DNA of 64,000 nt from Marsupella aquatica. Its lineage: Eukaryota; Plantae; Marchantiophyta. Below the pieces are notes generated by a model. The model ran no database searches. It saw nothing but the letters and a program-made list of their open reading frames with translations, and was not told the DNA's origin. The stretch spans positions 1,201,573-1,265,572 of the forward strand of contig OZ316899.1 in the NCBI GenBank assembly GCA_973895155.1. Reading direction: 5' to 3'. Of the stretch, positions 31,437 through 40,968 are shown piece by piece. The position numbers and the translations under genes were made by a program. Every line of letters begins with the position of its first letter. Position 1 is the stretch's first letter.

Positions 31437-32009
31437 ATGAAATCTCCTGCGATTGCAGAGACGATGGGTAAAGGCGTTGAGTGTTTCAATAAGTTTCGCC
31501 CAAGATTTGAAAGACATCTAACTCTCCAACGTAGTCTCACAAAAGAATACGATATGTTGGAAACTTTCCTTCTTCCAGGGCTTCCAAACGAACTCGTCGA
31601 GAAGTTAATTTGGCAGTCAATTCTGAAGGATTACAATGCCCTCGCGGATGAAAGTTCATTTTCTGATACAGTACTAAATTCATTGGTCTCCCTCAGGTCA
31701 GTCTCTTGAAGGTGGTGGCACTTGATAAATAATACCTATCTCTTGGGGGTAATCAAGATGACTATTTTGGACTTTCCAGAAAGGAAAGCAGTGTTTCCAG
31801 TTGAATATATTCCTGCGCCTCATCTGAAACAAACCACATACAACTTTTTTAGAAAGTATCCAGATCTAAAATTCTTGGGATCAATGCATAAACGCCTTCT
31901 AGATCAGTTCACGAAGGCATTAGACTTATTGCATCCCATTGAAAAATGGAAATTCACGTTGCTCTATTACAAAAGCAGATACCTGGAGAATGGTTTCTAT
32001 TCTAGATAG
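31437..32009 (+). pseudogene. F-box protein 1 (one in-frame TGA)
   Basis: FLLPGLPNELVEKLIW...LRSVS*RWWHLI. ORFs 31437-31709 and 31722-32009 are in frame across the TGA at 31707-31709; CGA would give the typical LRSVSRRW. Confidence 0.72.
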
Positions 32010-32049
32010 AATTTGCTCCTAATAAGTTCCATTTGGTCTATAAGGCAAG

Positions 32050-32631
32050 ATGGACCACGCCTCTTCGAGAGACGCGCAGCTCGAGAGGGTTTGCGACTTC
32101 CTCAAAGAAGTTGAGAGAGGAGAGAAGTCACAAAGATGGAGGCTAAATCCGGAATCTTCCTTCATAGGAGGTTTGCCGGATGGTTTGGTCGTCGATAAAA
32201 TTTGGCCTCTTTTGATGGATGAAAGTCTTAAGAGCGGAGATCTTGACCGAGAATTTTTTGTCTCTAGGACGACTGACATGATCCGACTTGCATCATGCAA
32301 CAAAAAGTGGCAATTTCTAGTCAAAAATACAAAATTTTGGTTTGCTCTCGAAGAAGCAACAGAAAAAATAGAGAAGATCAACGACGACCTAGACTATGTC
32401 CCAGAAGCCAAACTTTTAACGCCACGGCATCTCTTAAACGTTTTCAAAGACAACCTCTACGAGTTTTTGAGTATCGAGATACTTGGTTCCCTTCGTCCAG
32501 AGGACATAGTGATATTTTGGATGTTGTGGAACTGTTTGAATGCCGAACAAAGAGAAGTAGTGCAGGATAGATTCCGAGCCTCCAAAAATGATAACTCAAG
32601 GAAATCATTGTATTCCAAATTTTTTGAATAA
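32050..32631 (+). CDS. F-box protein 2 (193 aa, open frame)
   Basis: FIGGLPDGLVVDKIWPLL...MIRLASCNKKWQFLV matches the start and end of an F-box with an internal insert. Confidence 0.68.
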   Translation: MDHASSRDAQLERVCDFLKEVERGEKSQRWRLNPESSFIGGLPDGLVVDKIWPLLMDESLKSGDLDREFFVSRTTDMIRLASCNKKWQFLVKNTKFWFALEEATEKIEKINDDLDYVPEAKLLTPRHLLNVFKDNLYEFLSIEILGSLRPEDIVIFWMLWNCLNAEQREVVQDRFRASKNDNSRKSLYSKFFE

Positions 32632-32732
32632 AATCAAAATCCATTTCATTTGTACTTGTTGTACTCAAGAGGCACACGGAAAAGTGTTCCGCGAGCTCTA
32701 GATCTTGACTTTCTAATCGTGTTTGTTTGCAG

Positions 32733-39200: not shown

Positions 39201-39470
39201 GACTCTTCTAATAATGACTTCATGAAGCCGCGGAACACTGTTCCGCCAGAGACCACTTCATCTCGGGACGGCAATTCGAGTCTTCATGGGACTGTAAAAG
39301 AGATATTGTCGCTATCAGATTTGAAAGCCATAAACTCGAGATCAGAGTCTGCTAGAGTCTGCTTCTTTGCGAGTTCCAAAGGTACCATTTCTGGAATTTT
39401 AGTGAAGCTTTAGACGGTTTCAACTAGTGTGGAACGAATAAGTGGCTAAAATAAACTTTGATTTTGCAGA

Positions 39471-40155
39471 TAATGCCTCTTACATGATCTGAAAGTAGCA
39501 AGAGGTTGATAGACAAATCCCTCAGTCTATCTTTGGATGATAGAGAGGTTTTGACTACTATCAATGACATTGACATCACTCGTAAAGTTATGAAGTCTCT
39601 CCGTCCCAGAGACTGGTTGGCCTCGGATATTATTAATGGATACTTCATTTTATCAAAGGAAAAAGTGATATCTTCAAGATGTCATTTTTTCAATACGGGT
39701 TTTATGGTAAACTCACAAAGAACGAATATTGTTACAGTCCGTGCATATCAAGATGGTCGTCACGACTAGGATATAGCTTGTTTGATTGTGACAAAGTTTT
39801 TGTCCCAATTCTCCAGAACTTTCATTGGACTCTTGCTATCATTGACTTCAAGAAAAAGAGTTTAAAATATTTAGACTCCTTTCATAATGCAGATTCCAAA
39901 GTACTAGAGAACTTATGGCGATATATGTTAGACGAAGCAAAAGATAAAGGACTTGCTTCTTTTGACATTAATGATTGGAGTCGATCCTTTCCAAAAGATA
40001 TTCCAAAACAGGAGGATTCATATAATTGCGGAATGTTTGTAATTATGTTCACTTATTGTGAGAGTTTAGGAAAACCCTATTCATTCCATTGGAGTAGTCA
40101 ATGTGTAAGTCAACGTGAAGTAGTTCTCCAATTACTGCGTAAGAGTATTAGTTAG
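39471..40155 (+). pseudogene. Ulp1/C48 SUMO protease, ESD4/ULP1a-like; one frameshift in a T run at ~39685
   Basis: SLRPRDWLASDIINGY..CHFFNTGF|YGKL..RWSSRLGYSLFDCDKVFVPI..FHWTLAII..YLDSF..LWRYMLDEAKDK..PKQEDSYNCGMFV; His, Asp, Gln and Cys catalytic residues are present. Confidence 0.93.
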
Positions 40156-40266
40156 TCTATTAGAATCAGAATTCATTTTAGAATATGTTTCCTATTGAAA
40201 TGTTTAATAAAATTGATATTGTAAGTATTGGTTGTTACATGATTATGTGAGTAATATGTTATTGCT

Positions 40267-40968
40267 TTGTTTTATTTGGCACAGGTGGTGAAATATTTTA
40301 AAGGTACAAGATTGCTTGTACTTGATATGGATGCATTTCTTTATTATCCTTGTGAGGTATCATCGAAGATCAACAAGTCGAGATTAATCGCGGTGGACAA
40401 TGTTACAATATGTACACGACCATTTTTCCACCAGTTTATGAAATTCTGTTTTGAGCATTTTAGTGTAGGAATTTGGTCACGGATGTCAAAAAAAATACTG
40501 ACAAAATACTTGGCAGTATTACTAAGCCACGGTGAAAGGAGTACACTGAAGTTTTCCTTTGGGAAAGAGAAATTATCGAGAATTGGTCTCGATGCTAACC
40601 AGGACTTTGTTTATTTGAAACTACTTGAAACCGTGTACCTTAAGATGCCACATATAATTAGAAAGAATGTGACACTTCTAGATTTGCCGAGTAATACATT
40701 CTGCAACACTTTTTGGTCATCTTTATATCCTCCTCCGTATCATGGAGGTGAAGATGATATATTTTTGAGAACTCAACTTATTCCTTATCTTTCTCGATTT
40801 TACGAGTTTGATAATTCGTGGAATTATGTTCAAGACTATTATCCGGATTGGTCCCTAGAGTCTTTACATCTAGCTTGGGAGACAAATGAGAAGAAATGGA
40901 AATCTTGTCGTGTATTTCAAAGGAAGGGAAACGTACATCATGTAGCAAAATTTAGAGCCCACACTTAG
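40267..40968 (+). CDS. FCP1/NIF-type HAD phosphatase-like protein (partly degenerate motifs)
   Basis: RLLVLDMDAFL, RPFFHQFMKFCFEHFSVGIWS, NVTLLDLP, LYPPPY..DDIFL..LIPYL. A likely splice acceptor at ~40282 suggests an upstream exon. Confidence 0.8.
   Translation: MFYLAQVVKYFKGTRLLVLDMDAFLYYPCEVSSKINKSRLIAVDNVTICTRPFFHQFMKFCFEHFSVGIWSRMSKKILTKYLAVLLSHGERSTLKFSFGKEKLSRIGLDANQDFVYLKLLETVYLKMPHIIRKNVTLLDLPSNTFCNTFWSSLYPPPYHGGEDDIFLRTQLIPYLSRFYEFDNSWNYVQDYYPDWSLESLHLAWETNEKKWKSCRVFQRKGNVHHVAKFRAHT

Follow-up and report, generated by a model that had tools for sequence, protein, structure and literature searches.

Accessory genes of a decayed terminal-inverted-repeat transposon in the liverwort Marsupella aquatica: two F-box-like reading frames and a large gene with putative alternative Ulp1 and NIF ends

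The stretch of DNA considered here, called the window throughout, comprises 64,000 nucleotides of the liverwort Marsupella aquatica (GenBank assembly GCA_973895155.1, contig OZ316899.1, positions 1,201,573 to 1,265,572), and all positions below are counted from its first letter unless a relative is named. It contains a 22.6-kb DNA transposon with terminal inverted repeats (TIRs). With moderate confidence we read the region from 31437 to 40968 as half of this transposon, a dead copy whose accessory genes it contains: two F-box-like genes and one multi-exon gene with alternative ends. The features are listed below, with a slash marking each splice point.

19491-42125, no strand: whole DNA transposon, 22.6 kb, delimited by TIRs, a target-site duplication (TSD) and an empty site.
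19982-23129, minus strand: transposase gene, four open reading frame (ORF) pieces with a DUF7869 domain (Pfam PF25273).
23193-23786, no strand: palindrome cluster A, six sites, upstream of the transposase.
30706-31270, no strand: palindrome cluster B, seven sites, just upstream of F-box-like ORF 1.
31437-32009, plus strand: F-box-like ORF 1, intronless, matched by tblastn with ORF 2; tail conserved in the related contig L010 (3-140).
32050-32631, plus strand: F-box-like ORF 2, intact, 193 codons; Pfam F-box match at E 0.0085, below the cut-off.
32733-33989, plus strand: exon 1, with a splice acceptor right before the ATG and the donor TGGAAG/GTA; one unbroken ORF of 394 codons in L010.
34117-35427, plus strand: exon 2, within a 456-codon ORF; acceptor CAG/CCATTTTGT and donor TG/GTAAG conserved; 49% identical to L010.
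35537-35867 (approximate), plus strand: exon 3, part of a 136-codon ORF with splice motifs; 42% identical to L010 3653-3991.
36098-39199, plus strand: low-complexity linker rich in E, K and R, with an acidic/basic equivalent in L005, L010 and L013.
38950-39381 (start approximate), plus strand: exon before Ulp1, donor CCAAAG/GTA; homologous exons in L004 and L005.
39470-40155, plus strand: Ulp1/SENP-type exon with its own conserved stop (Pfam match; homologues P0003 and P0004).
40285-40968, plus strand: NIF (SCP/UBLCP1-type) phosphatase-like exon, acceptor CAG/GTGG (Pfam match; PDB profile match to UBLCP1).

The ends of the element are a perfect 19-bp inverted match (19/19) between 19491-19509 and 42107-42125, and both are flanked by the 4-bp TSD TGGT (19487-19490 and 42126-42129). 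Two public sequencing runs from the same organism, X1 and X2, contain contigs that join the left-flank sequence straight to position 42126; the 4-bp TSD is fixed because this empty site is found in paralogous, uninterrupted gypsy copies. The insertion site is the gag of a minus-strand gypsy retrotransposon, which is split into pieces at 42113-43354 and 18592-19140 because the transposon inserted there. The transposase lies on the minus strand at the left end, with DUF7869 matches at 20713-21012 (E 6.6e-22) and 21237-21602 (E 8e-4), and the accessory genes form the plus-strand half. A TIR transposon with a 4-bp TSD and a transposase known from its Pfam match to DUF7869 would be Sola-like by its TIRs and TSD, a label that we take from the length of the TSD. 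The family is multi-copy: in X1 the summed contig depth over the Ulp1 and NIF parts is several-fold above the ~20x of exact single-copy contigs, and X3, a run from a second species, holds copies 85-95% identical to the window. The right sub-terminal part (41066-42106) is not uniform: X1 covers 41066-41293 at single-copy depth, and the G+C-rich stretch 41294-41750, where the summed depth rises and other contigs are internally rearranged, looks like a small nested repeat.

In the Ulp1/SENP-type exon, the Peptidase_C48/Ulp1 domain (PF02902, 39679-40155) was found at E 8.7e-23 and 81.7 bits against a cut-off of 20.7, and relatives reach 107 bits. A profile made from the window exon and two relatives covers the complete catalytic domain of SENP2 and SENP1 (SENP2 E 1.4e-34, residues 24-224). 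The catalytic His-Asp-Cys residues and the oxyanion Gln are present, as the motifs HW, LDS, KQ and NCG do not vary between the window and the intact homologues P0003 and P0004 (61% and 54% identical to the window) and align to the active-site motifs of SENP2. The position of the stop is likewise conserved in relatives. Judged by these matches, the exon belongs to C48, yet its copy in the window is unable to produce an enzyme. Scanning metagenomes with the Ulp1 alignment recovered only unrelated, intron-rich Ulp1 genes (L006-L009), which were set aside.

The NIF exon scored 41.5 bits against a Pfam cut-off of 21.8 (PF03031), and in profile searches of PDB its sole solved-structure match was UBLCP1 (E 5.5e-9). 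Pfam found none of the features specific to FCP1, such as BRCT, and the exon ends 45 codons past the NIF match. In the window motif I reads DMDAF, with both aspartates kept, including the nucleophile; the serine of motif II, the lysine of motif III and the first aspartate of motif IV are also present, and motif IV reads DL (LLD-LPS) in place of the DD or DN, of which several relatives keep DD. In HAD-type phosphatases the residue two places past the nucleophile serves as general acid/base. This second aspartate of motif I is found in two of the 12 NIF units, those of the window and of L005 (DVDVF), and is E, N or K in the other ten, with E in L004, P0002 and units 2 and 3 of L001 (unit 3 being P0001), N in L001 unit 1, L013 N1, L015 N1 and L015 up1, and K in L013 N2. 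Because the acid/base aspartate is replaced in ten of 12 units, phosphatase activity is probably not the conserved property of the exon, which would instead be the fold, perhaps as a binding module.

The Ulp1 and NIF parts are most likely alternative last exons of one large gene and not separate genes. This follows from the splice sites and from where translation could begin and end: the donor CCAAAG/GTA of the preceding exon, the Ulp1 acceptor CAG/ATA and the NIF acceptor CAG/GTGG are all in phase 0 and conserved in three lineages, the stop of Ulp1 is conserved, and NIF has no ATG of its own. A pyrimidine-rich CAG acceptor lies 8-12 codons ahead of motif I, without an upstream ATG, in nine of the 12 NIF units, and in the remaining three a contig end or a frame break interrupts the unit. 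A read-through fusion of Ulp1 and NIF by way of GTAAGT at 40105 was also considered and rejected, as L004 and L005 lack that donor and the relatives keep both the stop and the last helix of Ulp1. NIF units occur in tandem sets of two or three (L001 5-2358; L013 15015-16662; L015 1863-3556 and 13356-15103), and, as most have their own acceptor and their motif I variants differ, they may be a set of last exons from which one is chosen.

The two small ORFs lie upstream of the large gene and are tandem paralogues that share an LPxxLV...CxKxW pattern and have each their own ATG and no introns. ORF 2 aligned to ORF 1 by tblastn with 27% identity (E 3e-5), and the alignment crosses a TGA at 31707-31709; an intron in ORF 1 was thereby ruled out in favour of a single frame with an in-frame stop. 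Pfam scored ORF 2 at 16.4 bits against an F-box cut-off of 20.5 and gave no match for ORF 1. The L010 homologue of ORF 2 (33% identity, E 5e-28) reached 23.2 bits against the same cut-off (PF00646), with a match covering only profile positions 18-42, the second half of the domain. Among the look-alikes retrieved by a protein language model, F-box was the sole named family; sequence and profile searches of PDB with these ORFs gave no match. In the window the motif is interrupted by an insert of ~20 residues, and no second, substrate-binding domain was found by Pfam in the window or L010. Taken together, the two ORFs are probable F-box proteins.

The N-terminal block of the large gene is of three exons. 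The acceptor and donor of exon 1, those of exon 2 and the splice motifs of exon 3 are common to the window and L010, and partly to L013; each exon was searched separately. The 456-codon ORF that holds exon 2 spans 34111-35481 and is rare, with 22 related clusters among 1.84 billion representatives in an exhaustive search; a word-based protein search and a metagenome scan with it found nothing. Labels that had been considered for these exons, ParB-like for exon 1 and methylase-like for exon 2, found no support in Pfam or PDB profile searches. The charged linker that follows contains an exact 229-nt duplicate (37141-37369 and 38210-38438) flanking an 840-bp non-repetitive spacer (37370-38209). 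Such a duplicate fits neither a simple tandem duplication nor the usual target-site duplication; it could have come from a recent rearrangement or be an artefact of assembly.

An initial annotation of this region had described co-oriented, tandem F-box genes, a Ulp1 protease and an FCP1-like phosphatase behind one motif-rich upstream region, and had called the genes spliced and mostly full-domain. The Ulp1 and NIF domains exceed their Pfam cut-offs, the two ORFs are indeed in tandem, and all four parts are on the plus strand, behind the seven palindromes of 30706-31270 ahead of ORF 1; the F-box label remains below the cut-off in the window itself. The splicing of the F-box genes has to be withdrawn, as both are intronless and the apparent break in ORF 1 is the in-frame TGA. 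Nor are the domains mostly whole, since the Ulp1 part has a 10-bp duplication, a TGA and a 1-nt deletion, and exon 1 has two TGAs. The protease and the phosphatase, taken there for two genes, are probably exons, given the shared donor and the NIF exon without an ATG, and the comparison with FCP1 gives way to UBLCP1. That annotation also passed over the conserved core of the large gene to which these exons would belong.

The order of these parts could be followed in diverged relatives. The 4.9-kb Logan contig L010 has the tail of F-box ORF 1, F-box ORF 2, exon 1, exon 2, exon 3 and the charged linker, with identities to the window of 47-69% for exon 1, 49% for exon 2 and 42% for exon 3. In L004 and L005 the exon before Ulp1 is followed by Ulp1 (61% and 54%) and NIF (40-45%). 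Two further relatives, L013 and L015 of assembly GCA_965154635.1, are treated as another genome because they have no nucleotide match to the window, and they contain exons 1 to 3 in the same order, followed by an acidic ORF and two NIF units; neither Ulp1 nor F-box was detected in them by tblastn or by Pfam of their ORFs. The conserved core consists of the three unnamed exons and NIF, to which Ulp1 and the two F-box genes seem to have been added in particular lineages. F-box, Ulp1 and NIF together make no fixed unit, because L013 and L015 keep the core exons and NIF without detectable Ulp1 or F-box. A literature search found no paper describing this cassette.

Selection was estimated as non-synonymous relative to synonymous substitution (dN/dS) by the Nei-Gojobori method for the window, L004 and L005, and gave 0.09-0.28 for Ulp1 and 0.21-0.40 for the N-terminal part of NIF. 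Between the window and L010 the proportion of non-synonymous differences (pN) was 0.19-0.45 and that of synonymous differences (pS) was saturated at 0.79-0.90, with F-box ORF 2 the least constrained (pN 0.45). The best-supported variants listed from other copies comprise 12 synonymous and 15 non-synonymous changes, a ratio of ~0.4 in this small mixed sample when corrected for site numbers. Rough as they are, these values exclude neutral evolution for most of the history of the family and show purifying selection between lineages. The initial annotation had proposed gene order and dN/dS as checks on its view that the genes are not random captures, and both agree with that view: order is kept in L010, L004 and L005, with frames and splice sites, dN/dS is well under 1, pN is far below pS, and the cargo is not random. 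Its picture of one coherent, conserved toolkit of ubiquitin, SUMO and phosphate functions fares less well, given the relatives without detectable Ulp1 or F-box and the replaced acid/base aspartate of NIF.

The copy in the window is dead. Six lesions were found in it, of which four are in-frame stops and the other two are a 10-bp duplication and a 1-nt deletion. The stops are the TGA of F-box ORF 1 (31707-31709), two TGAs in exon 1, at 33498-33500, where L010 has CGA, and at 33945-33947, 14 codons ahead of the conserved donor, and a TGA at 39485-39487 in the Ulp1 exon; one of these is a clear CGA-to-TGA change, as would be expected from the decay of a methylated CpG. In the exon before Ulp1 a 10-bp tandem duplication (AGAGTCTGCT twice, 39344-39363) shifts the frame ahead of the donor CCAAAG/GTA, and at 39697 the Ulp1 exon lacks one nucleotide. 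There, other copies in X1, X2 and X3 have G>A and an inserted T, which restores NTWFY as in the intact relatives. A sequencing or assembly error behind this frameshift was rejected, as an exact contig at single-copy depth (X1 record 2) matches the reading of the window.

The non-coding parts of the element are marked by a 15-bp palindrome, CGGAACASTGTTCCG, with 17 sites (at most 3 mismatches) against 1.3 expected, all of them in 23193-39245 and hence inside the transposon. Besides clusters A and B, single sites are found in gaps at 32677, 34061 and 36012, and one is within coding sequence (39231-39245). This last site encodes PRNTVPP, and L004 (120-134) keeps the peptide and a degenerate form of the motif, so that it may be constrained at the DNA and protein levels at once. 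The 6.9 kb between the two clusters (23787-30705) contain part of a Copia-type integrase (26953-27790) as well as families of short repeats (25133-25545 and 27996-28108), and such nested insertions have probably separated a once compact divergent promoter region. L010 has the CGGAACASTGTTCCG motif in common with the window. L013 has zero copies of it and 28 copies of another palindrome, CGAACCTAGGTTCG, in equivalent places. These sites lie at 7998-8743, 12166-12710 and 14580; 20 of them form a regular array with 29-bp spacing upstream of the large gene, and copies outside the array are in spacers past exon 3. The distance from the array to the start codon in L013 is only ~280 nt.

At the level of the family, we propose that the plus strand would encode two small intronless F-box-like genes and one large multi-exon gene, in which a charged low-complexity linker separates a conserved three-exon N-terminal block from a last common exon. 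Splicing from the donor of this common exon would lead either to the Ulp1/SENP exon, which has its own stop, or to one of one to three NIF-type exons. Element-specific palindromes are placed in both promoters, in introns and in spacers, and the large protein may recognise its own element through them. It could thereby bring a SUMO protease, or a mostly non-catalytic domain like that of phosphatases of the RNA polymerase II (Pol II) C-terminal domain (CTD), to the chromatin or transcription complex of the element. The F-box proteins would be a lineage-specific add-on acting as SCF adaptors. This model is built on the element borders, domain identities, lesions, order, splice sites, purifying selection and lineage-specific palindromes described above, from which we infer alternative splicing, DNA recognition and an effect on silencing or transposition. 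A counter-defence role is a plausible analogy with VANC and KIU of the VANDAL transposons of Arabidopsis and is compatible with the lineage-specific palindromes, whose pattern recalls the motifs targeted by VANC (PMC5735166). More tentatively, the family could be a bryophyte transposon family with a modular, palindrome-reading anti-silencing device, which has as alternative ends an active SUMO protease or a phosphatase-like domain with mostly altered catalytic residues and, in some lineages, F-box proteins, and which would be convergent with VANC/KIU and made of unrelated parts.

Several observations weigh against this model. The N-terminal exons have no Pfam or PDB sequence match, and for that reason DNA binding by them is putative. 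RNA runs were searched for the stretch and none holds it, so that the exon joins and the choice between Ulp1 and NIF are deduced from DNA only. The F-box assignment comes from half-domain Pfam matches, and both of the AlphaFold runs on these ORFs gave a predicted local distance difference test (pLDDT) below 50, at 47-48, too low to judge the fold. Synonymous divergence is at or near saturation, which makes the dN/dS values rough, and the absence of Ulp1 and F-box from L013 and L015 rests solely on tblastn and Pfam of ORFs. Additionally, the six lesions disable the window copy, the NIF of L005 (1976-2281) has two in-frame stops, and some decay is thus found in all copies seen in full.

Among other explanations, the one that survives best, though we hold it to be rather unlikely, is that the accessory proteins serve transposition itself, in assembly of the transpososome, recognition of the ends, regulation of the kind known for TnpA of En/Spm, or self-processing of the large protein by Ulp1, and would not counter silencing by the host. 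The palindromes are element-specific and co-vary with lineage, the splice logic would allow one gene to yield alternative products as in En/Spm, and accessory DNA-binding proteins that guide a transposase are known (PMC13547354). However, the palindromes cluster in promoters and introns and not beside the TIRs, and a SUMO protease or a CTD-phosphatase-like fold has no known part in cut-and-paste chemistry.

Somewhat more doubtful is the proposal of a coherent counter-defence cassette in which three independent enzymes or adaptors (an SCF F-box protein, a SUMO protease, a Pol II CTD phosphatase) would each strike at a silencing pathway of the host, as viral effectors do. Domains of all three kinds occur here in one orientation, they are kept in the closest relatives under constraint, and there are precedents in viral F-box suppressors and in the Ulp1-bearing VANC genes of VANDALs (PMC13317346). 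Nevertheless, the three are not kept together in L013 and L015, where Ulp1 and F-box were not detected, ten of 12 NIF units lack the acid/base aspartate, and Ulp1 and NIF appear as exons sharing one donor, NIF having no start codon. The remaining suggestion, that host fragments were captured at random in the manner of Pack-type elements or that an ordinary host gene cluster lies between transposons, is very improbable: Ulp1 domains of plant Mutator-like elements have been described as transduplicated host sequence (PMC13317346) and the window copy is full of stops and frameshifts, but the block lies inside a single element bounded by TIRs and TSD, is multi-copy in two species, and has kept its order, splice sites and frames at just 30-60% protein identity, with pN far below pS.

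The remainder of the window is repeat-rich eukaryotic DNA, and the minus-strand gypsy element covers most of its left and middle parts. This element has LTR-like direct repeats of ~4 kb (5829-9165 plus 14094-14688, against 43484-47396, ~94% identity), each carrying a long coiled-coil ORF (6707-8203 and 44374-45435), and its protease, reverse transcriptase, RNase H and integrase ORFs are at 18309-14925. A further LTR element is nested in the 3' LTR (9166-14093), and its ~850-bp LTRs are also found at 58004-58929.

We know of no well-studied transposon-encoded, sequence-specific anti-silencing system other than VANC of the Arabidopsis VANDALs. If our proposal is true, this family would be a second, unrelated one, which would suggest that self-targeted helper systems are a recurrent transposon strategy in land plants. 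In the layout shared with VANC, a large accessory gene is combined with arrays of the element's own motifs and, optionally, with a Ulp1 module. The family would offer parts that can be tested, which are an intact SUMO-protease exon, a CTD-phosphatase fold in natural DxD, DxE, DxN and DxK versions, and very small F-box proteins. In annotation, F-box, Ulp1 and phosphatase matches of this kind should be read as transposon genes, here pseudogenes, and not as host genes.

Comparison with known systems places the parts as follows. En/Spm (CACTA) makes two proteins, TnpA and TnpD, from one transcription unit by alternative splicing. The family described here is alike in having one large co-oriented unit with putative alternative products from a shared upstream part; it differs in that the putative products would vary in their accessory C-terminal modules, with the transposase encoded apart from them by a divergent gene, and the two systems have no sequence relationship. 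Polerovirus P0 and nanovirus Clink are viral F-box suppressors of silencing. Like them, the small ORFs would encode proteins with little beyond an F-box and belong to a genomic parasite, whereas here the F-box is split by the insert, SKP1 binding is putative, and homology is not expected. With SENP1, SENP2 and Ulp1 (C48) the protease exon shares a match over the full catalytic domain and the His, Asp, Gln and Cys residues, and it differs as the last exon of a transposon gene, broken in the window copy. The NIF exon resembles SCP, UBLCP1 and FCP1 in an above-cut-off signature, with the nucleophile Asp, Ser in motif II, Lys in motif III and the first Asp in motif IV; unlike in these proteins, the second Asp of motif I is present in two of 12 units and motif IV has DL in the window, and the BRCT of FCP1 was not seen.

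The closest parallel is with VANC and KIU of the VANDALs, which are non-TIR Mutator-like elements. VANC binds short element-specific motifs upstream of and in introns of its own genes, with which it co-evolves, and the Kaonashi (KIU) group of VANC carries an Ulp1 domain (PMC5735166, PMC10398659, PMC13317346). Both systems have a transposon-encoded accessory gene, sometimes with Ulp1, and element-specific motifs arrayed in non-coding parts that differ between lineages; here the arrays are in both promoters, with single sites in introns and spacers. They differ in that the present element has a DUF7869 transposase, TIRs and a 4-bp TSD as against Mutator, 15-bp palindromes as against 9-bp direct motifs, and NIF exons and F-box genes in addition. 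No VANC-type Pfam family was matched by any of the scanned ORFs. Because no homology was found and the transposase type differs, the likeness to VANC would be convergent, with a similar arrangement of motifs, accessory gene and Ulp1 module assembled in an unrelated transposon.

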